A stretch of 38,249 bases of DNA from Piromyces finnis finn (lineage: Eukaryota; Fungi; Neocallimastigomycota), in assembly GCA_002104945.1 (NCBI GenBank), contig MCFH01000118.1:1-38249 (forward strand), read 5' to 3'. Under the pieces are notes generated by a model. That model was given only the letters and a program-made list of their open reading frames with translations, did not search any database and was not told where the DNA came from. The position numbers and the translations under genes are program-made. This document shows, one piece after another, positions 5,440 to 31,940 of this stretch. The first letter of the stretch is position 1. Each line of letters opens with the position of its first letter.

Positions 5440-5795
5440 TGTTAAAATTATAATGAAATAATTTTATATTTTATTTACTATTAATTAATTATATAATTAT
5501 ATATTATTTAAATTTTTATGTATTAATTAAATTAATTATATGAAAAGTATAATTTTATTTAATATTATATAAATATATATTTTTTACTATTATTAAAATG
5601 TAGTTCTTTTCATAATATAAGAAAAGACATTATTAAATAACTTGTATTAAATAATAATAAATATTAATAACAAATATTAATAAATAAATAATAATAAATA
5701 AATATAAAATAATATATATACATATTATACAAATATTTATTTATAAAGTGTTGGTGTTATATAAAATATTATAATAATAATATTTAATCATAAAA
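5440..5795 (+). repeat. B 5' LTR (TG...AA termini)
   Basis: Direct repeat of 11012-11367. Confidence 0.95.
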
Positions 5796-5809
5796 GATTA
5801 AGAGTCTCA
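5796..5809 (+). promoter_or_regulatory. B primer-binding site complementary to the tRNA-Lys(CUU) anticodon arm (half-tRNA type)
   Basis: GATTAAGAGTCTCA abuts the LTR. Its reverse complement TGAGA-CT-CTT-AA-TC reads as tRNA positions 27-40. Confidence 0.75.
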
Positions 5810-5823
5810 ATTGTCTCAAGAAA

Positions 5824-8769
5824 ATGTCTAATAATAAAAATAAAAATCTACTAAGTTCAAATATGGACCCTTCTAGTTTTATAGGAAAATTCCAAATAGA
5901 ACTTAATAAAGAAAATTTTCAAGCTTGGCAGATCAAAGTCAGAGATATTTTAAGATGCTGCGGTTTGGAAGAATATATTGATGAAAATAAAACTCCAAAG
6001 ATATATATAAAGAATATATCAGAGAGTGAAAAAGAAAATTATAAAGAAGTCCCACATGAGCCTAACATGTACTATAATAAAAATGTAACAGATGAAACTC
6101 TTGCTATTGATAATAAAGTAAGAATGTTTATTAGAAGTACATTGGCACCAAAATCAGTTGAAGATGTTCAAAGTAGAACACTTACTGGTTACCAAATATG
6201 GAAAACTTTAGAAAGTATATATATAGGAAACCAATCCAGTAAGAAAACTGACCTTATTAAAGAAGTGAATAGAATGAAATACAACCCACAAGATAGTATA
6301 GCCAGTTTTGTAAATAAACTAAATTTAAAATTTGAAACATTAGAATCCATGGGAGTCCATATAGATGAAGAAGAAAAGGCCGCCGTTTTATACAGAGCTA
6401 TGCCAAAACAATACCAATGGATAAATATATTCGATTATGAAGGTAACTGGACTTTATGTAGAGAATATGTATCAAATAGAGTTCAGTCTGTTCAAAGGTC
6501 AGAAGAAAGGGAACGAAGTAATAGGCTTGGATTTAATCAAGTTTTTAGTAGTGAAAGTGGCTATGGAAATTATGATAATTATAATCATAAAAATAATAAA
6601 TTTTCAAATTATAAAAATAAAAATAATAAAAATAAAAATGATATAATATGTCATTTTTGTAATAAAAGAGGCCACATTGAAAGAAACTGCATATTTAAAG
6701 AAAAATTAGCAAAAGAATATAATTCAAACAATAAAAATTATAAAAATAAACAAAATAAAAAATATAAAAAGAAATATGCAGATGTAGTTACAAAACAAAG
6801 AAGTAACTACAAGGATATAACACCAAATTTATTCAACGTGGATTATGATTCTACATATGAAAAAGAATCAAACAGTGTTGTAAAAGTAAATTTTTCAAAT
6901 AAAAAATATAAAAAGGTTATAAAATCAAAAGGGAACTTTAGTATGTGGATGCTAGATTCAGGAGCATCAGTTCACCTTACAAACGATATTAAATTATTAT
7001 ATAAAATTAAAAGACATAAAGAACCAATTTACTATGCGGATGGTGAAGTTGGTTATTCTACACATATAGGCAACATAAAAGGCTACTTTAATAAAGAACA
7101 AATAATTTTAAAAAATGTTTTATATGTTCCAGATATTAAAAGGAATTTAATATCTATTTCAAATTTTGTTAAAGAAGGTCTTAATGTAAATTTTAAATAT
7201 ATAAATAATGCTGCCACAGCATTTATCCAAGATAAAAATAAAAATAATATATATGTATCAAGAGAAGATGAACATAACATATTTAATGTTTATATATCAA
7301 AGACAAAATTATTTAACTACCAAATACAAAATCCAATGTATTGTTATTCAATTAGGAAGTTAAATAATGATGAAAAATTACATCTTTGGCATAGAAGATT
7401 AGGTCATTTTCATGCCAAAAGTATTGAAAATAAATTATTAAATATAAACATTAAAGATATTTGTGAAACATGTTCATTATCAAAATTAAAAAATCAACCA
7501 TATCATAGTTCTACTAATAAAAGTACAGAAGTACTTCAATTAGTACATACTGATATAGTTGGACCCATTAACGCGTCATCTATATACGGTAATCATTATT
7601 TTATTACCTTTTTAGATGATTATTCAAGATATGGATGGGTAATTTTTATAAAAAATAAAAGTGACGCGTTTAACGCGTTTAAAATATGGTATAATAAAGT
7701 TACCAATGAATTTAAAAAGAATATTACATATTTAAGAAGTGATAATGGTACAGAATATAAGTCTTTAAATTTTAAAAATTTTTGTGATACTCATGGTATT
7801 ACACAACAATTCACTGTACCATATAATCCACAACAAAATGGACGCGCTGAAAGGTTTAATGGAGTACTAATCCATGCAGCTACCACTATGATGCAAGATG
7901 CTAAATTATGTAGAAGATTCTGGGAAGACGCAGTCAGAACTGCCAATTATATACATAACAGGTTACCTCACAATGGAAATGACTTGAAGGTACCCTATGA
8001 AATGTTATATAATATCCCAGTAGACTACAGTAAATTTCGTGTTTTTGGATGTAAAGTGTTACATCTTAAACGTAACACTGAAAAACACAAATTTGAAAGC
8101 ACTTCGCTACCTGGCATATTTATTGGTTATGATGACACTTCTACCGGATTCAGAATTTTTGACTTAAATTCTTTTAAAATTGTCATCAAAAGAGTAGTTG
8201 AATTTTTAGAAGACCAACCAGGTAATTTTAATTTTGATGATAACGTCAAAAATGTCAATTTCATCGATTATGATTCATTAATCAATGAAATGGAGGGGGA
8301 CGATAACGAAAGTCTTCAACAGGACATAGAAATTGGCATATCATCAAACATTAATAACAATGATTTTCCAAATAATTTTAATAAAATAAAATATAATGCC
8401 AACAATAACTATATCGGCATTAATAGTAATAATAATAAGGATAATATTATTTATAACAATAATAATAAAGAAAACATTAAAAATTATAACATAAATGAAA
8501 ATAACAATTTAAATATAAATAACAATTTAAATATAAATAACAATTTAAATGAAAATAACAATTTAAATGAAAATAATATTTTAAAAGAAAATAACGATTT
8601 AAACACAAATAATAATTTAAATGAAAATAATAATTTAAATGAAAATAACAATTCAAATAAAAACAATAATTCAAATGAAAACGATAATCCAAATAAAAAC
8701 AATATTTCAGATGAAAATAATAATTCAAATGAAAGTAATGATTTAAATAAAAATAAAATAAAAAAATAA
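5824..8769 (+). CDS. B polyprotein part 1: Gag (CCHC), protease, GAG-pre-integrase, integrase, Asn-rich linker
   Basis: CHFCNKRGHIERNC, WMLDSGASVHL, HLWHRRLGH...CETC, LVHTDIVGP, LRSDNGTEY, NGRAERFN. Confidence 0.95.
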   Translation: MSNNKNKNLLSSNMDPSSFIGKFQIELNKENFQAWQIKVRDILRCCGLEEYIDENKTPKIYIKNISESEKENYKEVPHEPNMYYNKNVTDETLAIDNKVRMFIRSTLAPKSVEDVQSRTLTGYQIWKTLESIYIGNQSSKKTDLIKEVNRMKYNPQDSIASFVNKLNLKFETLESMGVHIDEEEKAAVLYRAMPKQYQWINIFDYEGNWTLCREYVSNRVQSVQRSEERERSNRLGFNQVFSSESGYGNYDNYNHKNNKFSNYKNKNNKNKNDIICHFCNKRGHIERNCIFKEKLAKEYNSNNKNYKNKQNKKYKKKYADVVTKQRSNYKDITPNLFNVDYDSTYEKESNSVVKVNFSNKKYKKVIKSKGNFSMWMLDSGASVHLTNDIKLLYKIKRHKEPIYYADGEVGYSTHIGNIKGYFNKEQIILKNVLYVPDIKRNLISISNFVKEGLNVNFKYINNAATAFIQDKNKNNIYVSREDEHNIFNVYISKTKLFNYQIQNPMYCYSIRKLNNDEKLHLWHRRLGHFHAKSIENKLLNINIKDICETCSLSKLKNQPYHSSTNKSTEVLQLVHTDIVGPINASSIYGNHYFITFLDDYSRYGWVIFIKNKSDAFNAFKIWYNKVTNEFKKNITYLRSDNGTEYKSLNFKNFCDTHGITQQFTVPYNPQQNGRAERFNGVLIHAATTMMQDAKLCRRFWEDAVRTANYIHNRLPHNGNDLKVPYEMLYNIPVDYSKFRVFGCKVLHLKRNTEKHKFESTSLPGIFIGYDDTSTGFRIFDLNSFKIVIKRVVEFLEDQPGNFNFDDNVKNVNFIDYDSLINEMEGDDNESLQQDIEIGISSNINNNDFPNNFNKIKYNANNNYIGINSNNNKDNIIYNNNNKENIKNYNINENNNLNINNNLNINNNLNENNNLNENNILKENNDLNTNNNLNENNNLNENNNSNKNNNSNENDNPNKNNISDENNNSNESNDLNKNKIKK
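8491..8760 (+). repeat. 18-bp imperfect tandem repeat encoding (NNNLNE/I)n
   Basis: Repeated AATAACAATTTAAATGAA-type units in frame. Confidence 0.85.
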
Positions 8770-8789
8770 AAATAAAATAAAAAATAAAA

Positions 8790-10951
8790 ATAATAATACA
8801 AAAGAAGATAATAATTTAAATAAAACAAATAAAAATATTAATGAAATATATGATGATAATGATATTAATAACATAAATCATATAAATAAATTTAATGATA
8901 ATAATGACGATAACAACGTTAATATTATTAATTCACATAATAAGAATAATATAAATAATAATATAAATAATAACTTCATTAATAATATGAAAGACAATAA
9001 CAGTTATAAAATTAAAAACAACAATAATAATATTCATAAAAAGAAAAATAAAAGAAAAGTAATCGACAGTGACGAAGAAAGTGAAGATGAAAGTAAAATT
9101 AAAATTAAAAGAAATAAATTCTTAAACAAAGAAGAAAGGATAAATAAAATAATTGAAAGCGAAAGAAAATCTAAGAACAAAATTTCTTATAAGGCTAAAG
9201 ACTTGGACAATGGAATTAGTTTATCAGAATTAAATAAAAATAAACAAAAAAATAATAACTCATTAAGCTATATTCCAAACCATTCACTAGATGTAGAACA
9301 AAGACAATATCCAAATTATCCAAGGAACAAAAGAAAAATTTTGGATAATAATGAAAAGTATACAACTAGTAAAAGAATAAGAAAAGAAATAAATAACGTT
9401 GATAAATCATCAACGACAGATAACCAAATAACAGAACCAACAAGTTTTTTTGAAATCTTTAAGAGAAAAGATAAAAGAAGATGGCTTGACGCTATAAATG
9501 ATGAATTAAACAATATGAAAGAACGCAAAGTATATGAAAAAATAAACAAAGTTCCACAAAATACTAATGTAATTACCTCAAAATGGGTGTTCAAAATTAA
9601 AAGGGATAGCAAAGGAAACATTACCAAGTATAAAGCACGCTTAGTAGCTAGAGGATTCACTCAAGAATACGGTACGGACTACAAAGAAACATTTTCTCCA
9701 ACATTAAAACATGATTCACTAAGAATTCTTACAGCTATTTCAGCAGAAAAGAAATTTTATATACATCAATTAGATATAAAGGCAGCTTATTTATATGCTG
9801 ACTTAAATGAATGTATTTATATGTATGCTCCAGAAGGAGACTCTACTTACCGAAAAGGCTATTGGAAACTAAATAAGGCACTCTATGGTCTCAAGCAAGC
9901 AGCACGAGAATGGAATAATAATATAACTGATACTTTAACTAATATTGGATTTAAAAGACTGGTAAGTGAACCCTGTATTTTCGTTAAGAAAGATGATAAC
10001 AATAATATAAAATGTTTGTTAGGAATATATGTCGATGATATCCTAATATCAGGTAACAATTATGAAATAAATAAAACTAAAGAATTACTAAAGAAAAGAT
10101 ACAAAGTTACCGATATTGGATATGCAGATTTTATTATTGGAATTAAATTTGAAAAATTAAACAATGGATACTTACTTCACCAAGAAAGATACCTTAGAGA
10201 TATCTTAAGAAAATTCAACTTAGAAAACTGTAAACCTTGCAAAACACCTAAACCAGCAAACGAAGTTGATGATAAACAAGAAAAATATAACCCAACAAAG
10301 TATCGTGCAGCCATTGGTAGTTTACTATATCTTGCTATATCTACTAGACCAGACATTTTATTTTCAGTCACCAAAGCAGCCAGAAAATCACAAGAACCTA
10401 CTTTTAAAGACTGGGAGAATGTTATTCAAATTTTTAAATACCTCAAAGGAACCATTAATTACGGATTGCTCTATTCAGGCGAAGCTTCTTTAAAGACCTT
10501 TGTAGACGCAGACTACGGTAGTGACAAAGTAACCAGAAGATCAACCACCGGATTTGTTTTCTTCATGGGAAGTGGTCCCACGAGTTGGTTTTCGAAACTT
10601 CAACATTGTATTGCTACCTCTACAGCTGAGTCAGAATATTACAGCTTATGTGAGTGCGGAAAACATTCACTTTGGTATGCAAACATACTTAATGAGTTAG
10701 GGATAACTCATAAATGTACTGTAATAAACATTGACAACCAGGCAGCAATTTATAATGCTGAAAATGATACTATTAATCCAAAATCAAAACATATTGATAT
10801 TAAGTATCATAAAATAAGAGAAATGGTAAAAGAGAAAAAAATTAAATTGGAATATATCAAGTCCTTAAATAACATTGCTGATGGTTTCACAAAATATTTG
10901 GATGCTACAAAAATGTCTATTTTTAGAAATAATTTATTACATAAATATTAA
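8790..10951 (+). CDS. pol: B polyprotein part 2: linker, RT, RNase H (frame offset from part 1 within the A-rich tract 8751-8800)
   Basis: WVFKIKRD, KYKARLVARGFTQ, YVDDILI, FVDADYG, STAESEY, IDNQAA, ADGFTK. The frame is open upstream of the Met at 8987 back to about 8790. Confidence 0.93.
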
Positions 10952-11004
10952 ATGAATATTAAATGAATATTAAATGAATATTAAATAAAAGTATTTATAC
11001 TTTT

Positions 11005-11011
11005 GGGAGAA
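11005..11011 (+). promoter_or_regulatory. B polypurine tract
   Basis: GGGAGAA immediately before the 3' LTR TG. Confidence 0.75.
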
Positions 11012-11367
11012 TGTTAAAATTATAATGAAATAATTTTATATTTTATTTACTATTAATTAATTATATAATTATATATTATTTAAATTTTTATGTATTAATT
11101 AAATTAATTATATGAAAAGTATAATTTTATTTAATATTATATAAATATATATTTTTTACTATTATTAAAATGTAGTTCTTTTCATAATATAAGAAAAGAC
11201 ATTATTAAATAACTTGTATTAAATAATAATAAATATTAATAACAAATATTAATAAATAAATAATAATAAATAAATATAAAATAATATATATACATATTAT
11301 ACAAATATTTATTTATAAAGTGTTGGTGTTATATAAAATATTATAATAATAATATTTAATCATAAAA
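11012..11367 (+). repeat. B 3' LTR
   Basis: Direct repeat of 5440-5795, followed by TSD TAAAT. Confidence 0.95.
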
Positions 11368-11610
11368 TAAATTAATTTAAAAAATTTTTAGTATAAATAC
11401 GAGTGAATTTTCCCAAATATTTTAAAGAATCGAGATTTTATTAATAAATAATTATATTATTAAACACTAACTTATTAAGTTAAATTCTATGTGTTTTTAA
11501 TGATATTTTTATAAATTAATAATTTACAGATTATTTTAAAGTGTTAATATTACTAAGTTATTTAGTAAATATTATAATTTGTTTTATTGTTAAAGACACA
11601 TTTCTTTACA
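11368..11610 (+). repeat. C 5' LTR, right segment (TATA at 11392, probable TSS ~11432, U5, ends TTTACA)
   Basis: Matches 18061-18303 with one substitution seen. Confidence 0.95.
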
Positions 11611-11620
11611 ATAAAATCTC
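11610..11620 (+). promoter_or_regulatory. C self-priming PBS
   Basis: AATAAAATCTC is the reverse complement of GAGATTTTATT at 11432-11442, 40 nt downstream of TATAAAT. No TGG tRNA-type PBS is present. Confidence 0.8.
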
Positions 11621-11679
11621 CTTATAATATAAAAGCTTAATACCTTAGTGTTTAAGAAATTGTTATAGATAAAACTTTT

Positions 11680-12400
11680 AAGTTTTATTGTTGAAGCTTT
11701 TCTTTAAAGAAATATTTTTACTTAAAGTAGTAGAATTAGTACGCTTTAGAAGCGGTATATAATTCAAACTATAAAAAGTAAAAGATTAACGGGATCGAGT
11801 TTAACCTGTACAATAATTGGGTTGGCAGGCTCTGAGCTATTCTACTTTGAATAAGGAAGTAGGAGAATCCGAGGTACACCACGTACAAGACGCTGTAATA
11901 AGCAAGCTGGCGTGAGATTTATAGTTGTATACTATCTTTTGCTGTTTGATTATAGACCGGAAAATAGCCGGAAATGCCTTACTTTAATAAAATAATATTT
12001 CTTAATTAATACATTTTAAAATTAAGTTTTCTAATAAAACAATTTCTAATTTTTAATTATAATTATTAATTGTTAAGACAATTTATTAAAATTGTAATAA
12101 TATAAAATAATATTCTTTATAACTCCTTTAGCGTGAGAAGTTAAACTCTTATACATAATACTTCTACGTTCGGATAAGGTTGATATAGGGAAAGAAAACC
12201 TGTAATAATTTTTATTGCTAACAATAAGTTAGACACTAAAAAAAAAATTTTTACACCGTTCCTTTCTTTTATTAATTTAATTAATATTAACAATCGACTT
12301 TATACGTGTTATCGTGAAGAGCTACGAAGGACTTATTATAAAGAATAAAACAGGTTATATATTTGATGGTTTAACACTATATAATCTGGTTTATATTATT
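11680..12400 (+). ncRNA. Conserved structured 5' leader RNA of C, homologous to the F leader
   Basis: About eight co-linear conserved blocks and two hairpins with compensatory changes relative to 18370-19060 (minus strand). Confidence 0.7.
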
Positions 12401-12503
12401 ATTTAATAAAAAGATTTACTCAATTAATAAATATAATTAAATACTTTATTCTATTATTTTTACAAATTTATTAAAGCTTATTAAAGAAAACATCATAAGT
12501 ACT

Positions 12504-14700
12504 ATGGAAGAGAACGAAAACAACCACATGGATAATAATAATATTTTCGAAAACGCAACTCTTAAGGATGGTTTTGCAGGGGATCGCAGATATCTGAAGG
12601 GTTTCTTAGCTAAGGTGGAGCTAGTGTTTATGCTATATCCTGAACGGTATCAAGACGACGCAACCAAAATTCTCTATATAATATCAAGACTTTATGGGGA
12701 CGCTATGAATTGGGCTGCTACTCTTATAAACAACCATGATCCGTGTCTTAATAACTACCAAGCTTTTGTTGACAGGTTTAAGGCTTTTTATGGTTATAAC
12801 GATGCTACCTATGTTGCAAATCAAATGCTTAGAACCTTAAAACAACGCCGATTAGGAGGAATTAGAGGCTATATCTTGGAATTTAACCGCTATGCTGATG
12901 AATCAAACTGGAATGAACAAGCCAAAATGGATGCATTTATAGCTGGCCTTAATCAACAAGTTGCAGTTCGTATTTTGGAAATGTTTCCGGGTCCTAGGGA
13001 TCTTCTTTCATTACAGACTATTGCTTCAAGAATCGATTCAAGATTATCTACACATCATACCTTTTTCCCTTCTGGTTCAAACAATAACCAAAACCGAAAG
13101 AAAAGATCTTTTCATCACTCTTCAAAAATAACAAAGTCCATTACAAACAGGAATAACCATGGCCCTATCTCAAACGAAGAAAAGGAAAGAAGAAAGAAAG
13201 AAAATCTTTGTGTGTATTGTGGTGCTTCAAGTCATAAGCTTAATAATTGTCCAAAAAGAAAGAATAAAGATCGTGAAAATCCTTCACTAATATCTATTCC
13301 CACACTTATATCCGCTCCTAAAGAAGAAAACAAAACTCATAATAAAATGACAACTAAATTTAAACTTTCTTATGAACTAAATACGGATATTCTTATTGAC
13401 TCAGGATCCAAACTTAATTTAATTGATGTAGATTACTGTAACGATAATAACATTCCTTATCATGATGACGGTAACCTACCAAATATCGTTGGTATCGGTG
13501 GTCGACAATCTCTTTTTAGAATTACATCTCCTTTGAATCTTCGCTACAAAGATCATCTCTGTCGAACACAATTCTATGTAACTGATCTACCTTATTATCC
13601 TTGTATTCTTGGAATAGATTGGCTTAAAGAACACAATCCTTCTATCGATTTCACAAAGAACAAAATTTCATTTGTATCCGATTACTGTTATAATCGTTGT
13701 ATAACACTCTCCAATAATGTCCCTGAATTTCCTGAAGAAAGATCTGCTTTTCCTGCAATGGAAGATCCTTCCTACGAACCTCCGCATGATTCATTCGCTT
13801 ACCCTATATTTGTCGATAAACAAAACATCCAATCTCAAAACGAAACTAATCGTACTTGTACTATTCTCTGTTCGGGTTCTTCAAAAAATATTAACAATTC
13901 TGTTTCTAAGAAGTCTTCTGTTAACTTTTCTACTTCGTCTCTCTCAAATCAAGAACCAACTTCTGTTTTGACTTCTTTTTCTGATTCTAATATTCATTCC
14001 AATTCTATTCTCAAATCCGATTCAAACTCTAAATCAGAACCCAATTCTTCTATTATACTTCCGGATGTTCTCTCTGACTTTGCTGATGTCTTCAATGAAT
14101 CTAATGCTGAAAAACTTCCTCCACACCGTCCATACGATTGTGAAATAAAACTCAAAGAAAATTCAAAACTGTTTTATGGACCGATTTATCCTCTAACAGA
14201 AACCGAATCAATTGCTTTAGAAGAATATATAAAAGAAAATCTCAAGAAAGGATTTATTAGAAAATCAAAATCGCCTGCGGGAGCTCCTATTCTGTTTGTA
14301 CCTAAGAAAAACGGTCAACTTCGTATGTGTGTTGACTATCGCCAATTAAACTCCATAACTATTCGTGATTCTTATCCCCTTCCTCTTATACAAGATATGC
14401 TTGAACATCTTGGAAAAGGGAAGATTTTCTCAAAATTGGATCTTCGTTCTGCCTATAACTTGGTCAGGATTAAAAGTGGTGATGAATATAAAACCGCTTT
14501 TACTTGCAAGTTAGGTCATTTTGAATACTGTGTGATGCCTTTTGGGTTGAAAAATGCACCTGCTGTTTTTCAACATTTCATTAATGATGTTCTTGAAGAC
14601 GTTCTTGGTAAATTCGCTTTCTCTTACATAGATGATATTATTATTTTTTCCTCTGATTATAAATCTCATATATCTCATGTCAAAACTGTTTTGAAACTCC
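12504..14700 (+). CDS. C polyprotein 5' part: Gag (CCHC), protease, RT N-terminal part; interrupted by the solo LTR
   Basis: CVYCGASSHKLNNC, ILIDSGS, LRMCVDYR, MPFGL, YIDDIII. Confidence 0.95.
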
Positions 14701-15303
14701 TGTAAAGATATCAAACGCCTCTGTTTGATATCTTTAATGTAACTTAAGCCACAAGTATTATTGTTTAAGTTACACAAATTATATTCAGAAAAAGAAAATG
14801 AGACATAATTTATTTATTAATAATTAAAGTTTAAAACAAAATAAATTATTAATTTATTTTTAATGTTTAACAAGTAAATTAATATTCTCAATTTAAATCC
14901 CTAGTTTTAGTATTGTTTTTTTATAGAAATAGATAAATAATAAATGATTAATATATCAATAATACATGGGCACATATTCAAATTAAATAGTACTTAATTT
15001 GAATTGCCAATTGTATTTTACTAAAAATAGTTATAGTTTAAATATTTATTAATAATTAAGATTTTAGTGTAGATTTTAAATAATAATATATAAGAAATAA
15101 ATAGTTATAATATAATATAAATGTATTTAGGAAAAATATAAATAGAAGATATTTTTCATCATTTTATCGATGTAATTGTTATTATTAAAATTCTATTATA
15201 ATAAAAGATATTTTTAATAAAACAATTTTTATTTTTATTTTAAATTTAGTGTTATTGTAATAGAATAGATATCCTAATCTATTCTTTCTGTGTCGCCATT
15301 ACA
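14701..15303 (+). mobile_element. Solo LTR of the D family (603 bp, TG...CA)
   Basis: TSD ACTCC at 14696-14700 and 15304-15308. It is the reverse complement of 26483-27086. Removing it restores KTVLKLLRDAG in frame. Confidence 0.96.
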
Positions 15304-17554
15304 ACTCCTGAGGGATGCTGGGCTCTATGCTAAATTGGAAAAATGCGAGTTCTTTGTTTCTTTTATTGATTTCCTTGGTCATAGGATTTCTACTGATGGT
15401 ATTCACATGGACCCAAATAAAGTTTCTTCTATTTTAAACTGGCCTACTCCATCTAATGTTAAAGAGGTTCAATCTTTTCTTGGTCTTGCGAACTACTACC
15501 GTCGATTTATTCCAAATTTTGCAAAGATCGCTCATCCTTTGCATAAACTTTTGAAGAAAAATGTTAAATTTGTATGGTCTAAAGAAGCTCAAGATGCTTT
15601 CGATTCACTCGAGTCCTTATTTGTTTCTGCTCCTGTTATTATATTTCCTAATCGTGAACTTCCATTCATAGTCGAAACTGATTCAAGTAACTTTGCCATT
15701 GGTGCTATTCTCTCGCAAGTCTCTCCAATTGATAATATAACCCATCCAGTTGCTTTCTTTTCTCGCTCTCTTACTGGTCCTGAACGTAATTATCCAATAT
15801 ATGATAAAGAGCTCTTAGCTATCGTTGCTGCTCTTGAAACATGGCGTCATCTACTTAAAGGCTCTTCTTCTACTTTTAAGATTTACTCGGATCATCGAAA
15901 TTTACTCTATCAAAAGAAACCTGAAAAAATGTCTCAACGTCTTGTTCGCTGGGCTTTGTTTCTCTCTGAATTTAACTTTGTTATTATTTATCGTTCTGGT
16001 TCTTCTAACGGTAAGCCTGATGCTCTATCTCGTCGTCCTGATTATGCTATCAATTCGAATTCCTCTTCTGATGTTCCTTTTAATGTTCTTCGCCCTGAAA
16101 ATTTTTGTGCCATTGTAACTTCTGTTTCGTCCATTAGTAATTCTTTTCTTTCCGAATATATAAATGATGACTTTTACAATAAAATCTGTGAATATCTTGA
16201 TTGTAGGAAACCTCCAATACCTCACCCTCAAATTGACAAATTTTCCTTAAGCAATAGTTTTTTCCTTTTTACTGACAGAATCTATGTTCCTCCAAATTGT
16301 CGTCTTTCAATTCTTAAACTCTGTCACGACTCTCCTTCAGCTGGTCATTTCGGAATAAAGAAAACATCTTCTCTTATTGCTAGAGACTTCTGGTGGCCTT
16401 CTATTTCTTCTGATGTTAAAGACTACGTTCGTTCTTGTGAAGTTTGTTGTCGTTCAAAAACCTTTCGTCATAAACCTTATGGTCTTCTGAATCCTCTTGA
16501 TATTGCTGAGCGTCCTTGGTCATCCATTTCAATGGATTTCATTACAGATTTGCCTTCATCTTCTGGTTTCACTTGCATTCTTGTTGTTGTTGATCGTCTT
16601 ACAAAAATGGTTCATCTCATTCCGTTCAAAAGTATTCCTTCCGCCGCCGAAACAGCCACAGCCTTTATTGATAATATTTTCCGTCTTCATGGCCTACCTG
16701 AATCTATTGTCTCGGATAGAGGTTCTCAATTTACCTCTAAATTCTTCCAATCCATCTGTTCCTCCCTTGGCATTGAACTTAAGTTGTCTACTCCATTTCA
16801 TCATCAATCAAACGGTCAGACGGAGAGGGTGAACTCCGTTATAGAACAATATTTAAGATGTTTCTCAAATTATAAAGGTTCAAATTGGAAAAGTTTTCTT
16901 AGTCTTGCAGAATTTAGTTATAACAACGTGGTTCAAGAATCATCCAAATTTTCTCCATTCTTTTTGAATTACGGCTTTCATCCAAAATATTCACCAGTTA
17001 TTCCAGACTTATCTAAAGTCCCAAGAGCAGAAGAGTTTACAAGAGATTTTAAAACTTTAATTAATACCTTAAAAGAAAATTTAAAATCTGCCATGGAAAC
17101 CCAGAAGAAGCATGCTGACAAACGTAGAAAAGAAGCTCCGAATTTTAAAGTTGGTGACAAAGTTTGGCTGGATAGTTCTTTAATTATCCACAAAGGAAAT
17201 AAAAAATTTAAGCCAAGAAAACTCGGCCCATACAAAATCTTGGAAAAAATATCAAATGTTACATTTAAATTAAGTCTCCCAAAATCTATTAAGATTCATC
17301 CAGTTATTCATGTATCCAATCTCGAGAAATATGTCGAAGATAAATTTGGAAGATCTCAACCACCACCGCCACCTATTACCGTTGACAATGAAGAAGAATA
17401 CGAAGTTGAAGAAATTCTGGATAAAAGAAGACATTACGGAAAAATACAATACCTGATTAAATGGAAAGGGTATTCAATCAATGAAGCTTCGTGGGAGCCT
17501 GAAGAAAATCTAAATTGCAAGGGGCTACTTAAAAAATTTAATAGAAAGAAATAA
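15304..17554 (+). CDS. pol: C polyprotein 3' part: RT C-terminus, RNase H, integrase, GPY/F motif, canonical chromodomain
   Basis: [14 protein letters not shown]...[40 protein letters not shown]...YLIKWKGY...SWEPEENL. Confidence 0.96.
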
Positions 17555-17852
17555 AAAATAGTTAAAAAATTCAAATTATATTTATTATTAATATTAAAAT
17601 CACAATTATTATTATTATCAAAACTTATTAATATCATTATCAATATCAATTTTATTATTAAACAATTTATTAATATCAAATTTATCAATATTTTATTTTT
17701 AACTTTAGTAATATTAAAAAAAAAAAAATGTATTTTATTATATTAAATGTATTTTTATAATTAAGAAAATTCACTCCTTAGTTTAGTTTATTAAAAAAGA
17801 AAAACATATATTTAAATATTAAAATTCTAGATTCGTCTGGTATCCGAATCCT

Positions 17853-17861
17853 GGAGGAGGA
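17853..17861 (+). promoter_or_regulatory. C polypurine tract
   Basis: GGAGGAGGA, 3 nt before the 3' LTR. Confidence 0.8.
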
Positions 17862-17864
17862 CCA

Positions 17865-18303
17865 TGTAACGAATACTAGAAATAACTAAATTGTCTTAGT
17901 GGTTAGTAGCTAAGACTTTGAGTCTGAATGACACTAGTTCGAGACCTCATAGATACTATTTTAAAAAAATTATAATTTTATTTTATTTTATTTTATTTTT
18001 AAATTTTATTTTATATGAAGATTATTGATTGGTTAAGAATTTTAAGTTGAAAAAATTTTATAAATTAATTTAAAAAATTTTTAGTATAAATACGAGTGAA
18101 TTTTCCCAAATATTTTAAAGAATCGAGATTTTATTAATAAATAATTATATTATTAAACACTAACTTATTAAGTTAAATTCTATGTGTTTTTAATGATATT
18201 TTTATAAATTAATAATTTACAGAATATTTTAAAGTGTTAATATTACTAAGTTATTTAGTAAATATTATAATTTGTTTTATTGTTAAAGACACATTTCTTT
18301 ACA
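17865..18303 (+). repeat. C 3' LTR (439 bp, TG...CA), uninterrupted
   Basis: TGTAAC...TTTACA, matching the split 5' LTR. Confidence 0.96.
17885..17962 (+). ncRNA. tRNA-Gln(UUG)-like Pol III cassette, 3' LTR copy
   Basis: A box TGTCTTAGTGG (17892-17902), CT-TTG-AG loop (17916-17922), B box GTTCGAGAC (17937-17945), TTTT (17959-17962). Confidence 0.7.
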
Positions 18304-21055: not shown

Positions 21056-21549
21056 TGTAAAAGGTTTTTATATTATTAGTTAATAAGTTACTAATTAGTT
21101 AATTAAGTTAGTTATTACCTCTCTATACGAGTTAATAACTAAATAAAGTTTTATAAAAAATAATAAAAGAAAGAAAATAAATATTATAACACTAAAATAA
21201 ATATAAACACTTATATAAATATTTTATGAAATAACTTTTACTTAAATAATTATATTTTAATTATATCTTTTATTTATTTATTATAATTATCTACATTAAT
21301 TATTATTATAGCTATTAATTTACTTTAATACTAACGCTAAAGTATTTAACGTTAGTTTTGACTATACTATTTAACTATATGAGTTTATTTTCTTTACCAC
21401 TTGATTGGGTAAAGCAAATAAACTTCCTATTTAATTAATAACCATTAATATATGGTTATACATATATTTGGCCAATAAATGATGACCAGAATATATGGTT
21501 TCAATTGAAATATTTGTGGGCAAACTTATGGCCACAAATATTTCTTACA
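21056..21549 (-). repeat. E 3' LTR (TG...CA)
   Basis: Direct repeat of 33731-34224. Confidence 0.93.
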
Positions 21550-21552
21550 ATG

Positions 21553-21559
21553 CCCCCCT
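21553..21559 (-). promoter_or_regulatory. E polypurine tract
   Basis: Minus-strand AGGGGGG, 3 nt before the LTR. Confidence 0.8.
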
Positions 21560-21570
21560 AAGGAGAAAAC

Positions 21571-24500
21571 CTAGGCGGGGTTTTGGACACTAACCATGAA
21601 TTCCTGGTAGCATTTATCTTGAAATTCCTTGAGTAGCTTATCATAGTGGGAGTTCTTATCAATGATATCAGCATCAACCCACTCTTGCCTAAAGTCACTA
21701 AAGGTAGCTAAGTATTGGTAGTTATCCTTCTTTCTTCTAGCATTCATGATTTTGATGATTTTCTGGTAGCCCACTGGTGCAGGTGTTAGTTCTTCAGGTT
21801 TGTTATGGTAGGGTTCAAGTTCACTGATATGAAACACTGGGTAGACGTTGGGGAAAGGTGACTTGCTGATATCCAACCGGTAGTTAAGCTTGCTTTCATT
21901 AATTCCAATAACCTTGAAAGGACCGTACTTTCTTGCTTGTAGCTTGTAGAAGGGAAGAGGGTTGTAATTTTCTGGTTTTCTTAACCACACCAAATCCATG
22001 AGCCTAATTTTAGGGTAGTTAAGTTCTCTTCTATGGTCCAAGTGGTCTAAGAACCGTGTTCTTGATATGTCCAGCATGTGCTTTAAGTTACCTAAGTTGT
22101 GAGCGAAGCTATCTAATACAGGAGCTTCGCCAAGTGAGTGGACAAGTTCTGAATCTTGAGGGTTCATATGTACCTGGTAGTTATACAAGGCTAGGAATGG
22201 GGACTGCTTAGTAGAACTGTGCACTGCATTATTATAACAGAACTCAGCTAAGTACAAGTACTTCAACCATTCGTCGTCATCAAAGGTCTTCACAAAGCAT
22301 CTAAGGTACATACTTACGTAGGAGTTGTTACGTTCTACCTGACCAACTGTTTCATGATGGCCAGTAGTAGCAAGGTTTACTTCTACACCAAAGAACCCCA
22401 TAATGTCCTTCCACAACTTACTAGTGAACTGGACACCACGATCCGTAGTAACCGATTTGGGACAACCATGTAACTTGAATACATGTTGTAAGTATGCTAA
22501 TGCTGTTTCTTTAGCAGTAGGCATACTCCTAAATCCCACTAAGTGTATCATTTTGGTTAACTTATCGCTACAAACCATGATACAACCTCTTCTAGTGACT
22601 TCTGGGGGTTCTGATGGACTACTACCTGGTTTTCTGCGTTCCTTAATAGGTAGGTCCGTCAGGAAGTCAATTTCTACTTCTTGCCAAGGTAAGTCTGCAA
22701 CTTTTACCCTAGCAGCGCTACCATACGGCTTGTGTCTGTTGTCCTTTTGGGTACAACATATGGTGCAAGCTTTAATATAACCCGCAATGTCATCCTTCAT
22801 TTTTGGCCAGTAATAGTTTCTGGCTATCAGGTCGTAAGTCTTATCCTTTCCTAAGTGACCCGCTGTTTCACTATCATGGTTAAGTTTTATGATTGTTTCC
22901 CTTAACACCTTTGGTACATATGTACGTTCTGGTGCATCCTTCCTAACAATCAACCCATTAACCATCAACCACTTCTTTTTGATGAGCTTGTGGCCTCTTT
23001 TTGCGTCAAGACCATCTCTAATTTCCCTAGCAAGCTCATCCGTGTTGTAAGCTTGTTTCAATTCTCCCACAAAGCTTACTTCTAACACCGCATAGCACTC
23101 TTCTTCCACTGGTGGAAATTCTTTTACCTGTTCAGGTCGAAGGAGGCTAGCTTTTTCCATCTCCAGTTGTACCTGTTCTGGAGATACCATTCTTGATAGG
23201 ATATCGGCTCTACCATTCATTTTTCCTGGCCGATATATTATTTCGAAGTTGTATGCAGCAAACAGCTCTTGCCATCTTGCCTGTCTTGCTGTCAACAACT
23301 GTGGTTTTGTGGCGAACAGGAGATTCCTATGGTCACTATATACTAGGACCTTATGTTTCGCACCCATCAACAGGTGTCGCCACTCGATGAAAGCATTCCT
23401 AATAGCCAACAACTCCTTTTCTGTGATGGAGTAGTTGATTTCTGCTTTCGTAAGCTTCTTGGAATAGTAATACACAGGGTGTAGTTCATTGTCATCGCCT
23501 AGTTGTGATAATACACCACCCACCGCGTAGTTACTAGCATCGCACTCCACTATAAACTGACGGTCATGGTCAGGATATGCTAATACTGGTGGAGACAACA
23601 GCATTTCTTTTAACTTCTCGAACGCCTGGATGCGTTCTTCATTCCACAGGAACTGTACCTTTTTGGACGTCATAGCATATAACGGCCTTGCTATCTTAGA
23701 GAAGTCCTTTATAAACTTCCTATAATAGTCGCAGAATCCAAGGAATGACTGTAGTTCTTTGAGGTTGGTTGGTTGTGGCCAACTTGCTACAGCTTTTAAC
23801 TTCTCTGGGTCGGTTTTAATACCATATTTTCCAACTACATGACCCAGGAATGCAAGTTCTTCCTTGTGAAACTCACACTTCGCTAACTTAGCTACTAGAC
23901 GATTATCTATTAGCTTTTGTAGGACTCTTTTTACATGCCCTACATGCTCTTCAAGTGACTTGGAGTAGATGATGATATCGTCCAAGTACACTTGGCAGCA
24001 GTCGTTGATTTTTTCTGCCAGCACCGTATTAATGAACCCTTGGAACGTGGCAGGAGCATTAGTCAACCCAAATGGCATCACTAGATATTCATAATGCCCA
24101 AACTTGGTTGAGAATGCCGTCTTGTATTCGTCACCTTCACGAATACGCACGAGGTTGTAGGCAGACTTCAAATCCAACTTGGAGAAGATAGTCGCGCCTT
24201 TCATAGCTTCAAACACTTGACTGATGAGTGGTAAGGGGAAGGAGTTACGCACTGTTACCTTATTAAGACGCCTATAGTCAGTACATAATCGTCTTTCACC
24301 ACTCTTTTTGGGCACGAATAACACAGGATAACCTGCAGGACTCTCTGACTTCCTGATGAAGCCCTTTGCCAGGTTTTCCTCTATATATTCCTTCAGTGCT
24401 TTTTCCTCTTCTGGATTGAAGGGATATATAGGCCCTTTATGAAGACTAGCATCCGGCTCCAGGTCGATCTTACAGTCGTAAGGACGGTGTTCTGGTAGCT

Positions 24501-24741
24501 GGTTAGCTATTTCTTCATTAAATGCTTCTTTGAAATTGTGGTAGTACTTCTCCACGATTTCTTCAGGCGTAGGTTGATTTTCGTTTAAGTTTTCTTCCTG
24601 TACCAACCCTACGTAAATGTGATTTTTCTCTAAGTTCGACTCTTGTACCAACCCTACTGAAACACAAGTTTTCTCTAAGTTGGATTCAAATGCCAACCCT
24701 CCGGAATCACATTTTTTCTCTAAGTCAACACTCTGTACCAA
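21571..24741 (-). CDS. pol: E Pol: RT, RNase H, integrase, divergent chromodomain-like C-terminus
   Basis: RRLCTDYR, MPFGL, YLDDIII, VECDAS, HDSETAGH...CTIC, TDRGVQF, KYGPF, YQYLATF...EWV. Confidence 0.95.
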   Translation of the reverse strand: MVQSVDLEKKCDSGGLAFESNLEKTCVSVGLVQESNLEKNHIYVGLVQEENLNENQPTPEEIVEKYYHNFKEAFNEEIANQLPEHRPYDCKIDLEPDASLHKGPIYPFNPEEEKALKEYIEENLAKGFIRKSESPAGYPVLFVPKKSGERRLCTDYRRLNKVTVRNSFPLPLISQVFEAMKGATIFSKLDLKSAYNLVRIREGDEYKTAFSTKFGHYEYLVMPFGLTNAPATFQGFINTVLAEKINDCCQVYLDDIIIYSKSLEEHVGHVKRVLQKLIDNRLVAKLAKCEFHKEELAFLGHVVGKYGIKTDPEKLKAVASWPQPTNLKELQSFLGFCDYYRKFIKDFSKIARPLYAMTSKKVQFLWNEERIQAFEKLKEMLLSPPVLAYPDHDRQFIVECDASNYAVGGVLSQLGDDNELHPVYYYSKKLTKAEINYSITEKELLAIRNAFIEWRHLLMGAKHKVLVYSDHRNLLFATKPQLLTARQARWQELFAAYNFEIIYRPGKMNGRADILSRMVSPEQVQLEMEKASLLRPEQVKEFPPVEEECYAVLEVSFVGELKQAYNTDELAREIRDGLDAKRGHKLIKKKWLMVNGLIVRKDAPERTYVPKVLRETIIKLNHDSETAGHLGKDKTYDLIARNYYWPKMKDDIAGYIKACTICCTQKDNRHKPYGSAARVKVADLPWQEVEIDFLTDLPIKERRKPGSSPSEPPEVTRRGCIMVCSDKLTKMIHLVGFRSMPTAKETALAYLQHVFKLHGCPKSVTTDRGVQFTSKLWKDIMGFFGVEVNLATTGHHETVGQVERNNSYVSMYLRCFVKTFDDDEWLKYLYLAEFCYNNAVHSSTKQSPFLALYNYQVHMNPQDSELVHSLGEAPVLDSFAHNLGNLKHMLDISRTRFLDHLDHRRELNYPKIRLMDLVWLRKPENYNPLPFYKLQARKYGPFKVIGINESKLNYRLDISKSPFPNVYPVFHISELEPYHNKPEELTPAPVGYQKIIKIMNARRKKDNYQYLATFSDFRQEWVDADIIDKNSHYDKLLKEFQDKCYQEFMVSVQNPA

Positions 24742-24795
24742 CCCTACTGAAACGGGATTTTTTTTAAGTTGGAACTCGATGCCAACCCTCCGGAA
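24590..24795 (-). repeat. 45-bp (15-aa) tandem repeat, ~4.5 copies, between PR and RT of E
   Basis: Plus-strand CCAACCCT at 24603, 24648, 24693, 24738 and 24782. Confidence 0.88.
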
Positions 24796-26482
24796 CTTCC
24801 GTTCCTGGTTTCTTTTGTAGCCTTGTGGCTACCATTACCCACGATTTCGGCTTCTATGTTTTCCGCAGTTACAGTTACCAGAGGCCTTCTTGCTTTTGCA
24901 TTAGTAACTGTAGTTATGGGACTTAATTGAGTACAGTAGTAGATGTCGCCACCATTTACACCATATCTGTTGGTATGTCCTTTATCCTTATCATTATCTA
25001 CTACGAAGTACCTCACTTGTGCATCTTTATCATAACCTCTGTAGATAAAGTGCTCATCCATGAAGCCCAGTCCCACAATGATCATCTCCGGCATGTTGTC
25101 GGATAGGTGACAACTTGTGTTGAAGCAGTATGGTTTAGCTTCTTGTTCGCCAGATGGAGTTAACCATAACTTCAACTGCAAGTCATCTGAGAACTGCTTT
25201 AACTCGATATCTCCATTCACAGTTCTGAATATGGCTGGTTTGTCCACTACCTTTAACCCGAGCTTCTTTGCTAAATTTGGGTGGATGAGGTTTGTAGTGG
25301 AACCAGTATCATACAAGACTTCTACCCTTTTTATATCTCGAGGGTTGCTTCTTGCATTTATTTCAGCTACTAGTTGGTTCTGACTGTAGTAACTGTTATT
25401 GACCGTCGTTTGACTTGCCATAGCCTTAAGTAGTGGGTTATTTCCCATACTAGAAGGTCCTTGCCTTGGTTGGAAGCTAGAACTTCTTCTAAAGCTTGAC
25501 TTATTTAAGGATTCACGACGTTCTTTAGTACCGTTATTGTTTTTTGCGTAAGCCTGAGTGTTGGTCTGCTCAACTTTAGGCTTATTATTTGGCTTGTTGT
25601 TCTTCTGCTTTAACTCAGCCCATCTAGATGGTCTACATGGGTCTGTGATGTCCAACAAGGCCATAATAGTGGTCTGGCGGTCTCTTTTGTCGTACTTTTC
25701 TATGGTTTCATTACGGAAGACTGCTTGGTGATCATCGCACTTTAACAAGACTTCACTTAATGTTTCCAGCGTACGTTCCTGTTCAGGGATATCATAGAAC
25801 GCTTCCCTGACAGAAGGCCTGACCTGTTGTATTAACACCTGTCTCCTAACATTTTCAGGAAGCCCAAGTGTTTCCGTCAATTCATTGAACTCTTCCAAGT
25901 AATCGTATGCTTTTCCCCACTCATGTGTGAGCTTAAGCAACTTTGACTTGCAGAGTTCATGGGGAGACTCTGGTGGGAACTTATCTTGAAGGTGGAGGAA
26001 TAGTCTTTCAGCATCAGGATTCCTACGCTGCAACATCCTCTCTCTAAGTCTATACCATCTCAATACTTTCCCACCTAGATGATCTTCAATGAAGCTAACC
26101 TTTGCCTTTTCGTCGTTACCATAGTCATATGGGTAACGTTTGAAATGACGTAAGCACTTCTCTTGAAAACCCTCTAAGTCTATCCCATTATTATCAAACA
26201 TAGGCACTTTTTCTTCATACCTATGTACTCGCCAGTCGAACATCTTCACATCCCCATCCTCGGAGTATTCCGTAGGGTTGGTGCTGCTACTAGTTCCAGC
26301 ACCATGAGGATTACCCATACCACCGGTTTGATAGGATGTTCTTTCATGAGCTCTGGCTTCAGCTCTTCTGTTCATGGCTTCGACTTTAGCCTCGAACAAT
26401 TTTTCTCTTTCTTCTAGAGCATTTCGTTGCTCCCTCAATCTGGCCATCTCTTTTTTCAAGCTCTTTTTTATAAGAGACAAAG
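24744..26482 (-). CDS. gag: E Gag C-terminal part and protease
   Basis: Capsid-like VLRWY...YLEEFNEL segment and LYDTGSTTNLI protease motif. No CCHC seen. Confidence 0.9.
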
Positions 26483-27086
26483 TGTAATGCTGACACAGAA
26501 AGAATAGATTAGGATATCTATTCTATTACAATAACACAAAATTTAAAATAAAATAAAAAATTGTTTTATTAAAAATATCTTTTATTATAATAGAAATTTT
26601 ATTAATAACAATTACATCGATAAAATGATGAAAAATATCTTCTATTTATATTTTTCCTAAATACATTTATATTATATTATAACTATTTATTTCTTATATA
26701 TTATTATTTAAAATCTACACTAAAATCTTAATTATTAATAAATATTTAAACTATAACTATTTTTAGTAAAATACAATTGGCAATTCAAATTAAGTACTAT
26801 TCAATTTGAATATGTGCCCATGTATTATTGATATATTAATCATTTATTATTTATTTATTTCTATGAAAAAACAATACTAAAACTAGGGATTTAAATTGAG
26901 AATATTAATTTACTTGTTAAACATTAAAAATAAATTAATAATTTATTTTGTTTTAAACTTTAATTATTAATAAATAAATTATGTCTCATTTTCTTTTTCT
27001 GAATATAATTTGTGTAACTTAAACAATAATACTTGTGGCTTAAGTTACATTAAAGATATCAAACAGAGGCGTTTGATATCTTTACA
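26483..27086 (-). repeat. D 3' LTR (604 bp, TG...CA)
   Basis: Near-identical to 32246-32844; differences seen are mainly 1-nt indels. Confidence 0.96.
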
Positions 27087-27087
27087 A

Positions 27088-27098
27088 TCTCTCTCTCT
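27088..27098 (-). promoter_or_regulatory. D polypurine tract
   Basis: Minus-strand AGAGAGAGAGA, 1 nt before the LTR. Confidence 0.75.
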
Positions 27099-27122
27099 AA
27101 GTCGAGCTCCTGCGAGATTAAT

Positions 27123-29465
27123 TTATAAGGAATCTTTTCTCGAAGGAATTTCAATTACAAATGGTTGGTATCTGTGCTTGATTAGATTACCAACTTTATT
27201 CTTTCTAATTTTCATGGAGGAGTCGTTCGACTTATATTTTGACTTTTTAGAGTTTCTTTCAAACTCTTGTATTAATTGTTTATCTGGAATCTGATCTTCA
27301 GAAATCCAAGTGGATTTGTCAAATCCTTTCCATGATAACTTATAAAATGTTTCACCATTAACAGATTTCATCTTTTCAATTTTCTCTGGAATTTTTTCAA
27401 TTAAATCTGTGTTAAGGTGAATGTTCCTCTTCCTACGATTAGACCTGTCGTTAAACTTGTTTTCAAAGTATGGTTCTAACAATGAAACATGAAAGACTGG
27501 ATGACATCTCATTGTCTTTGGAAGTTTCAATTTGAAAGCGAGAGAACTAACTTTTCCAATTATCTCAAATGGGCCAAGCATTTGAGGTGCTAATTTTCTC
27601 TTTAGGTTAGTTCCAGGAGAATCTTTCAATAACCATACTTTCTTTCCCACTTCGAACTCCGGGGGAATCATTCTCTTCATATCGGCATATTTCTTATATG
27701 TTTCTTTTGCTTTTTCTAAGTTTTCTTTTAATAATTTAAAGTTTTCATTCATATCAATTACTCTTTGTTCAGCTCTACTAGGTCTATCATTAGCCGGGAT
27801 TTCCAAGCTGAACTTTGGATGAAAACCATAATTAGCAAAGAATGGGGATTGATTTATAGATTGTTGTAAAGTATTATTATATGCAAATTCAGCAAATGGG
27901 ATAAGATCAACCCAGTTATTCTGCTTTTTATTTATAAAACAACGGAAATATTGTTCTAATATGCCGTTCACCCTCTCCGTTTGACCATCTGTCTGCGGAT
28001 GGTTGGCAGTTGATAATGAATGATTGATATTAAGAAGGTCACAAAGTCTTGACCAAAAGTCAGAAGTAAATTGCGAGCCTCTATCAGAAATGATGGAATC
28101 AGGAAGACCATGCAAACGGAAGACATTAGCAATAAAAGCATCAGCAGCAATCGAAGCAGTAGGAAGACAACGTAAAGGAATGGCGTGAGCAAATTTAGTA
28201 AATCTATCGACAACAACCATGAGAGTTGTCATATCTCTGGACTTAGGAAGATCAACAATAAAATCAATAGAAATATCAGACCAGGGCCTACTGGGAGTGT
28301 CCAAAGGGGATAACAATCCATAAGGCTTATGTCTGGGGACTTTGGATTTGCAACAAGTCACGCAAGATTTGATAAAAGATTTAACGTCTGAATGAAACCT
28401 TGGCCACCAAAAGTTTCTGGAAATCAGTTCAGTGGTTTTCTTAATACCGAAATGACCAGCAGCAACAGAATCATGATGAAGTTCCAAAACTCTTGTCCTA
28501 AGAGATTTAGGAACATAAATAAGATTATTATATAACAAAAATCCTTCGTTATCAATAATAACTTTATCAATATTTTTAATAGGTGCATTACATGCAGAAC
28601 CATTCATTTTAAATTGGACAATAGAATTATACAAATCGTCATTTTTAAGTTCTAATAAAATAGAATCGATTAACGGTTTGTTATCGCTATGATGAAACGA
28701 AATAGTAAGACAAGAAACATCAGAATTAATATTATTCTCTAAATGGTCACTTCTACGAGACAGGATATCAGGCTTACCGGATTTCTTTCCAGCTCTATAA
28801 ATGAGTTTAAAATCAAATCTGGATAAGAACAAATTCCATCTAATTTGTCTCTGAGATAACATTTCAGGTTTTCTAGGAAATGTTAAATTCTTGTGATCAG
28901 TATAAATTATGAACGGATGGCGTGCACCTTCTAAATAATGACGCCATTCTTCAAGAGCAACTACAATAGCTAAAAGTTCCTTGTCATATATAGGATAGTT
29001 TCTTTGACAACTCGTCAAACTTTTAGAAAGAAATGCAATAGGATGTAATTTGCCATCAAATTCTTGAGAGAGAATAGCACCGACAGCATAATTACTAGCA
29101 TCAGTTTCTACAATAAATTGTTTATTACTATCCGCATGTTTTAGAATAGGAGCTGACGTGAACAGAGATTTTAATAAAATAAAAGCGTCCTGATCTTCTT
29201 TCACCCAGTTAAAAGCAACATTCTTTCTAGTGAGTTTGTGAAGAGGGTTTGCAATTTTAGCAAAGTCTTTAATAAAAATTCTGTAATAGTTGCATAAACC
29301 AATAAAAGACTGAACCTCTTTAACATTCTTGGGAACCGGCCAATCGAGAATTGCTTTAATTTTATTCTCATCCATTTGCAATCCATCCTTTGAAATGACA
29401 TAACCAAGAAAAGTGGTTTTCTCAACATCAAACTCACATATTTCTAATTTAACATAAAGATTATT
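27123..29465 (-). CDS. pol: D Pol 3' part: RT C-terminus, RNase H, integrase, divergent chromodomain
   Basis: [15 protein letters not shown]...[41 protein letters not shown]...TWISE. The frame extends upstream of 29381 to about 29465. Confidence 0.94.
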
Positions 29466-31666: not shown

Positions 31667-31901
31667 CTCTAAATTTAAATTTTCAAACTCACTAATTAAG
31701 TCCTCCAACGTTAAATATAAAACAAAATATAAAAATGTTTTCTTACTACTGTTTCAAGTAAGTAATTTTTTTTTTTTTTTTTTTTAAAAGAAAAAACTAT
31801 TTCTACAAAAACGATGTTAGTTAATACAAAAGTTATTCAAACTCGATCTGTTATACAGTGTCGAACAAGTTTGTATTATATAATATAATATTAATCAGAG
31901 T

Positions 31902-31940
<39 letters not shown>

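Follow-up and report, generated by a model that had tools for sequence, protein, structure and literature searches.

A tRNA-derived cassette with Pol III-type promoter boxes holds a fixed place in the LTRs of one chromovirus lineage

The long terminal repeats (LTRs) of a chromovirus from the fungus Piromyces finnis carry, near their 5' edge, a tRNA-derived cassette in which an A box and a B box of the type-2 RNA polymerase III (Pol III) promoter stand at tRNA spacing and the tRNA cloverleaf has been lost. The cassette keeps the same position in the LTRs of related elements, and conservation across this family is concentrated on the box positions that the promoter consensus specifies. We give an even chance to the reading that selection has maintained it as a type-2 Pol III promoter module, derived from a tRNA or SINE, that would recruit TFIIIC and Pol III upstream of an ordinary Pol II promoter. 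The analysis was based on contig MCFH01000118.1 of assembly GCA_002104945.1, taken over its full length of 38,249 nt and referred to here as the window; all positions are those of its forward strand unless an element or contig is named.

The window consists of nested LTR retroelements, and its DNA is very rich in A+T (13–18% G+C in intergenic and 26–43% in coding sequence). The element bearing the cassette, element A, lies on the forward strand and was recognized as a Ty3/gypsy chromovirus from its LTR pair and its Pfam domains: capsid, reverse transcriptase (RT), RNase H, integrase zinc finger and core, an SH3-like domain and a chromodomain (Chromo, E=1.5e-15). Gag, RT, RNase H, integrase and the C-terminal chromodomain follow in that order, flanked by the LTRs, within an internal region at 11611–17864 that codes for capsid, RT, RNase H, integrase and chromodomain. 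As inserted, element A measures ∼6.9 kb. Its 3' LTR (17865–18303, forward strand) is 439 bp long and starts with TGTAAC, a start common to its relatives; its 5' LTR, on the same strand, is divided into a left part (5239–5440) and a right part (11367–11610) by the nested Copia element B (5441–11366, forward strand). The two LTRs are 100% identical from 5245 onward, which indicates that a recently active lineage carried the cassette. Their first 6 nt differ (5239–5244 versus 17865–17870), the other 433 nt being identical, and no target-site duplication was found flanking the element (at 5239 and 18303); the differing start and the absent duplication could stem from an aberrant end or from rearrangement at a later time. 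Element B has identical LTRs, the same orientation as element A and a target duplication of 5–7 nt, and it sits ∼104 nt past the T run of the cassette. This is a single case and allows no inference on targeting to the cassette.

The gag-pol of element A (12504–17554, forward strand), which covers capsid, RT, RNase H, integrase and chromodomain, has one solo LTR nested inside it. Compared piecewise with uninterrupted relatives, it shows a single interruption and no other stop or frame change, so the solo LTR accounts for its one frame change. This LTR belongs to another family and is 98% identical to the LTRs of a second chromovirus at 26483–32844 (compared: 26483–27086), from which it follows that the family of that chromovirus was active after element A had inserted. 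The second chromovirus lies on the minus strand, nested in a further gypsy element at 21059–34226. Relatives of element A with an uninterrupted gag-pol, open over ∼1300–1400 aa, exist. The original prediction had called the carrier an autonomous chromovirus; the term suits the chromodomain-bearing Ty3/gypsy family, with its open gag-pol relatives, and not the window copy in its present, once-interrupted state. Elsewhere in the window, the open reading frame (ORF) at 126–2612 is another gypsy pol, with ∼70% identity to Orpinomyces sp. proteins in a protein search, and two minus-strand ORFs at 35972–36475 (167 aa) and 37266–38120 (284 aa) matched no Pfam family, the latter having no homologue in the protein collection. 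Tandem arrays were observed at 8390–8969 (18-nt units, within the Copia coding region) and at 31908–32249 (38-nt units, close to the nested chromovirus's 5' LTR).

The cassette occupies 17885–17962 on the forward strand of the 3' LTR and is present as an identical copy at 5259–5336, forward strand, in the 5' LTR, as had been predicted. Since the LTR begins at 17865, the cassette starts at LTR +21; it was correctly placed at the 5' edge of the LTR, inside U3, but does not begin at the first base as the original prediction had implied. Direct reading places every tRNA-numbered base, stem count and T run of that prediction in the register claimed: T8 at 17892, A14 and G15 at 17898 and 17899, G18/G19 at 17901/2, A21 at 17905, C32/T33 at 17916/7, TTG at 17918–20, A37 at 17921, C48 at 17932, G53 to A58 at 17937–42 and C61 at 17945, with TTTT at 17959–62 beginning two bases after position 73. 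The A-box-like motif (17892–17902; copy at 5266–5276) has 1 mismatch to TGGCNNAGTGG and the B-box-like motif (17936–17946; copy at 5310–5320) 1 mismatch to GGTTCGANNCC, both on the forward strand and both against the consensus as printed in PMC12193147 and PMC2996970. The gap between them is 33 nt, and the cassette therefore has the type-2 Pol III layout, in which A and B boxes matching the consensus lie 30–60 nt apart. No second A/B pair of like quality is present anywhere in the window on either strand, and none at ≤2 and ≤2 mismatches was found in the non-coding DNA of the window's elements C and D, the Copia element or the partial gypsy element at the left end. When the window was shuffled with dinucleotides preserved, only 2 of 200 shuffles held any A/B pair, even at the looser thresholds of ≤2 and ≤1 mismatches; pairs being so scarce in shuffled DNA, the boxes exceed chance expectation.

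Base composition sets the cassette apart from its surroundings, with 42% G+C compared to 12% in the rest of the LTR. There is no T4 run from LTR +1 to +94, and the first T4 run past the B box lies at 17959–17962 (copy at 5333–5336) on the forward strand, with further T4–T5 runs up to ∼18000. The LTR outside the unit has one T4 run per 20 nt. The T run that had been proposed as a terminator is thus present two bases past position 73, but it constitutes weak evidence because T runs are very common in DNA of 88% A+T. In the 341 nt from 17963 to 18303, runs of T4 or longer number 17 versus 3 of A4 or longer, a strong strand asymmetry.

The cassette no longer encodes a tRNA. Stem pairing in the window copy amounts to 0/7 in the acceptor stem, no Watson-Crick pair (2 G-U) in the D stem, 1/5 in the T stem and 4/5 in the anticodon stem. 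ARAGORN made no tRNA call for the cassette at default or 90% thresholds, and Rfam gave no tRNA match even at E≤10; relaxing ARAGORN to 80% and below produced inconsistent isotypes and registers, with Leu, Val or nothing called in relatives. Across the family alignment, 38% of cells pair in the cloverleaf, against 41% when shuffled and 32–44% when slid, so that the cloverleaf is lost from the lineage as a whole. The proposed kinship with tRNA-Gln(UUG) applies to the window copy only: L005, L004 and L002 differ at the TTG triplet, and relatives carry other triplets. Promoter-box matches that outlive the cloverleaf, which the original prediction had described, were borne out by these results.

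The LTR has its own signals for Pol II transcription and for reverse transcription. U3 of the 3' LTR (17865–18124, forward strand) contains an inverted CCAAT-like GATTGG at about 18026–18033 and a TATA box, TATAAATA, at 18085–18092, both on the forward strand, the latter ∼125 nt downstream of the cassette. The predicted start of R, which is also the candidate self-primer, lies at 18125–18134 (forward strand; 5' LTR counterpart at 11432–11441), 33 nt downstream of TATAAATA. This 10-mer is complementary at 10/10 positions to the 10 nt that follow the 5' LTR, and the primer-binding site (PBS; 11611–11620, forward strand) is its exact complement. The primer pair covaries in three versions (the window, L002/L006 and L009), and a covarying 10-mer complement is the signature of Tf1/Tj1-type self-priming. 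The PBS would thus be complementary to the first bases of the transcript, as in Tf1, with the transcript start taken from prediction. An element with its own Pol II promoter and self-primer does not need the cassette as a primer or as a genomic promoter. A role for a cassette RNA as primer of reverse transcription was rejected on its own account, as its 3' end is not complementary to the PBS, which matches the LTR's own R start. Likewise, a host tRNA gene lying beside the insertion, as known from tRNA-targeting elements, was ruled out: both identical LTRs contain the cassette internally, as do the LTRs of relatives situated in other contexts.

Directly upstream of the 3' LTR, a hairpin (GATTCG-N9-CGAATC) and a polypurine tract together form a block at 17830–17864 on the forward strand. 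This block is kept in L002–L006, L008, L009, L011 and L015–L017 with a column identity of 0.92, unlike the other non-coding DNA of those elements, which is barely alignable, and it is followed by an LTR start, TGTAACGAA, common to the relatives. The conserved block and TGTAACGAA fix the LTR start at 17865 and hence the cassette at LTR +21 to +98.

The relatives are metagenome contigs with 64–74% pol protein identity to the window and the same extreme base composition. They were identified either through their proteins or with an anchor built from the polypurine tract and LTR start, and together yielded 11 further LTR starts. Scanning with the anchor returned 6 true loci and 1 chance match from metagenome contigs, no match from viral contigs and 1 chance match only from prokaryote genomes. 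The cassette was found in the same place in 10 related LTRs (L002, a second LTR of L002, L003, L004/L011, L005, L006, L008, L009, L015 and L016), that of L003 being cut by the contig end. Across the family the A box lies at LTR +27 to +35 and the A–B gap is 32–33 nt, the spacing expected of a tRNA with a short variable loop. A-box mismatches range from 0 to 3 and most copies have one B-box mismatch; L004 has a perfect A box (9/9) together with 1 B-box mismatch. In no copy with preserved boxes does a T4 run occur before the end of the B box, and the first T4–T8 run follows 10–23 nt past the B box across the family, in DNA where such runs are very common.

Two contigs showed unusual arrangements. 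In L002, a second, inverted family LTR (∼50–568, minus strand) abuts pol and bears a cassette too, with 2 mismatches in the A box, 1 in the B box and a gap of 32 nt. L004 (4418–4706) and L011 (minus strand) are near-identical contigs that become fully divergent ∼10 nt past the T run of the cassette; the end of L011 is its own start repeated in inverted form, which makes an assembly artefact likely.

Chromoviruses at ∼50% identity (L012, L013, L014 and elements C and D of the window) lack the cassette at their LTR starts. Judged from this distribution, the cassette is a derived, long-kept trait of one lineage.

Conservation was assessed on 11 LTRs (alignment A3) from ∼6 lineages, with statistics that ignore relatedness. 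Mean pairwise identity was 0.77 in the consensus-specified box columns (A box 0.80, B box 0.75), 0.42–0.44 in the N columns inside the boxes and 0.57 in the remaining columns of the stretch between LTR +10 and 30 nt beyond the B box; the inter-box region was fairly conserved too (0.67). Random placements of both masks reached the observed identity in 107 of 20000 cases. The expectation that boxes rather than stems would be conserved is thus upheld, with specified columns above the others and above the N columns (∼0.43) and cloverleaf pairing no better than in controls. Closely related copies have nearly intact boxes against 60–80% identity in the remaining LTR; between the window and L005, for example, the A box matches at 11/11, the B box at 9/11 and the remaining LTR at 238/383 positions.

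Box quality is better behind a long open gag-pol than behind a broken one. Copies with a long open gag-pol (1295–1409 aa) have 0–2 A-box and 1 B-box mismatches, compared to 3–4 box mismatches or a deletion in the decayed copies L016 and L017 and 3 A-box and 1 B-box mismatches in L009. The boxes of L016 (2542–2687) have decayed, and L017 (4079–4224) retains the same LTR start with the cassette deleted (∼50 nt); both LTRs stand behind short open pol stretches. The L017 deletion says little either way, since that copy looks dead.

These patterns bear on the simplest alternative, that a copy of a tRNA or SINE landed in an ancestral LTR and has been decaying there harmlessly as a neutral passenger. 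The lost cloverleaf, an anticodon that differs between relatives and the degraded or deleted boxes of L015, L016 and L017 are what such decay would leave, and quite a few Repbase LTRs are known to hold tRNA-like pieces (Kojima, PMC10886601). We nevertheless regard neutrality as quite unlikely, as position and spacing are the same across lineages whose pol differs by 26–36% and whose LTRs are otherwise barely alignable, the G+C island (42% versus 12%) persists despite strong A+T bias, specified box positions are kept where N positions vary, and degradation is found mainly in copies with broken coding regions.

What selection acts on is a separate matter, for the cassette also has a fold of its own. 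All family members fold into two adjacent hairpins (z-scores −1.4 to −3.5), and in the second of these the B-box core, GTTCG, is the partner of a conserved YGAAC (5' arm at 17925–17929 in the window) wherever the B box is intact. In the family alignment this structure has 88.5% of cells paired, compared to 17–50% when it is slid, a control that is biased by the derivation of the structure from the same sequences. The covariation score was 0.17 against 0.127 in shuffles, 15 of 500 of which reached it, and covariation is weak, with both sides changed in 2 of 14 pairs. A candidate compensatory change in L015, where the altered B box seems to match the upstream arm, was dropped because it depends on a register shift.

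Such a fold could represent a structured cis element, its two hairpins past the polypurine tract having a role in replication, either at the level of plus-strand DNA or within the 3' untranslated portion of the genomic RNA. Plus-strand priming, primer removal, packaging or stability are possible roles, and the boxes would then be a mere relic of the captured tRNA. Two neighbouring hairpins in every member, pairing at 88.5% with covariation above most shuffles, conservation of YGAAC outside any Pol III box, outward extension of the second stem by different sequences in the window and in L005, and the adjoining, strongly conserved hairpin and polypurine tract are all in keeping with it. Furthermore, because the region between the boxes is conserved and YGAAC pairs with the B-box core, the hairpin rather than TFIIIC binding could be the object of selection. 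On balance we think it rather unlikely that the cassette is a structured element first and foremost: the fold was taken from the very sequences it was scored on, which introduces a bias into the slid control, changes on both sides occurred in only 2 of 14 pairs, and the register of the first hairpin differs between members. It also leaves unexplained the 9/9 A box of L004, the tRNA-like spacing of 32–33 nt and the variability at N positions. The alignment is suggestive of selection on a fold next to the purine tract, which may act together with selection on the boxes.

Returning to the promoter-module reading, the ancestor of a single self-priming chromovirus lineage would have captured a tRNA, or the head of a tRNA-derived SINE, at the 5' end of U3. 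The lineage would since have retained a type-2 layout, comprising an A box, a B box 32–33 nt downstream, a T-free body in the sense of one without T4 runs, and T runs soon after. In every LTR, TFIIIC may bind the box DNA, and Pol III may or may not make a short RNA of roughly 75–115 nt. The bound complex would then stand ∼125 nt upstream of the TATA-driven Pol II promoter of the LTR, and might keep that promoter open or shield it from silent flanking chromatin and read-through transcription. A boundary of this kind could be useful to an element that is aimed at heterochromatin by its chromodomain integrase and sits in dense transposon nests. We favour TFIIIC recruitment because of where the module lies, because the element's lifestyle is chromodomain-directed and because tDNA and extra-TFIIIC sites have barrier activity in yeasts, where heterochromatin is blocked by tDNA and TFIIIC sites alike (PMC2040200, PMC3395662). 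Against a Pol III role, a T4 run may be too short to act as a terminator in fungi, and a Pol III complex bound in the 3' LTR would obstruct the path of genomic transcription. That the Pol II promoter is insulated or that a small RNA is produced, as the original prediction had offered, is purely conjectural.

A different beneficiary can also be imagined. [quoted passage not shown] Helenus and Cassandra demonstrate that LTR-borne Pol III promoters can drive the propagation of TRIMs, and the conserved terminal, polypurine-tract and self-primer signals could be reused by a short derivative. In ∼113 kb of related loci, though, we found neither a short non-autonomous derivative nor an independent copy of the cassette; Pol III could not cross the T-rich LTR, with its one T4 run per 20 nt; and a transcript started in U3 differs from the R-to-R genomic RNA that self-priming requires. 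Service to TRIMs or to a small RNA is accordingly, in our estimation, very improbable.

Should the promoter module indeed recruit TFIIIC, it would represent a natural case of a mobile element that brings a tDNA-like boundary of its own into heterochromatin. The genomes of anaerobic fungi would then be strewn with TFIIIC sites and tRNA look-alikes, with a bearing on tRNA gene prediction, on nuclear organisation and on the origin of Pol III-promoted TRIMs (TRIMp3).

Several known systems share parts of this anatomy. We know of no Pol III-type cassette in the LTRs of Tf1/Tj1-type elements. The lineage resembles Tf1-type chromoviruses in an integrase that carries a chromodomain, and Tf1/Tj1 in a PBS complementary to the 5' end of its own transcript (PMC4600332). 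With the heads of tRNA-derived SINEs the cassette has in common a decayed cloverleaf, A and B boxes spaced as in a tRNA and an end in a T run; it differs in having no LINE-like tail and no independent copies, being found only at its fixed place in the LTR. Yeast tDNA and extra-TFIIIC boundary sites (ETC, COC) illustrate the proposed mode of action, in which B-box DNA acts without a useful RNA (PMC2040200, PMC3395662), although those are host loci.

The original prediction had named Cassandra as the nearest precedent. Cassandra, too, carries in both LTRs the remnant of a Pol III gene with conserved internal promoter and terminator. That remnant, however, is a 5S (type-1) sequence in non-autonomous plant elements, where the Pol III transcript is the template for transposition, whereas the boxes of the cassette are tRNA-type (type-2) and Rfam gave no 5S match. 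Helenus is a closer parallel: these are TRIMs with tRNA-derived LTR sequences, reported from fungi, animals and Selaginella (Kojima 2024, PMC10886601).

Helenus (a TRIMp3) is like element A in its tRNA-derived sequence in both LTRs, in conservation centred on boxes A and B, in a predicted RNA that is not a functional tRNA and draws inconsistent isotype calls, and in hosts that include fungi. Helenus elements are nonetheless non-coding, 311–1263 bp long and thought to be transcribed wholly by Pol III, whereas element A codes for gag-pol; and fungal Helenus pairs with Copia partners and uses tRNA primers, whereas the PBS of element A matches its own R start. Neither a non-autonomous TRIM nor primed by a tRNA, the lineage is not a Helenus. 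LTR-borne remnants of Pol III genes have so far been described only in miniature non-coding elements, where they are thought to replace the Pol II promoter, and no account of a coding LTR element with such a module was found in the literature searched. It has been argued that the autonomous partners of TRIMp3 have to rely on Pol II promoters and that LTR sequence is unlikely to be common to both (PMC10886601). The lineage of element A differs from Helenus in exactly this respect, as a TATA-type Pol II promoter lies downstream of the cassette and both promoter types share one LTR; since the boxes are kept beside a TATA promoter of the ordinary kind, the module must have a function different from driving the genomic RNA. 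Somewhat short of an even chance, and so tentatively, we propose that two polymerase systems are combined in one LTR, the TFIIIC/Pol III module acting as a portable chromatin boundary or opener on behalf of the element's own Pol II promoter; this lineage would then be the first counterpart of TRIMp3 elements of the autonomous type, and they may have originated from it.
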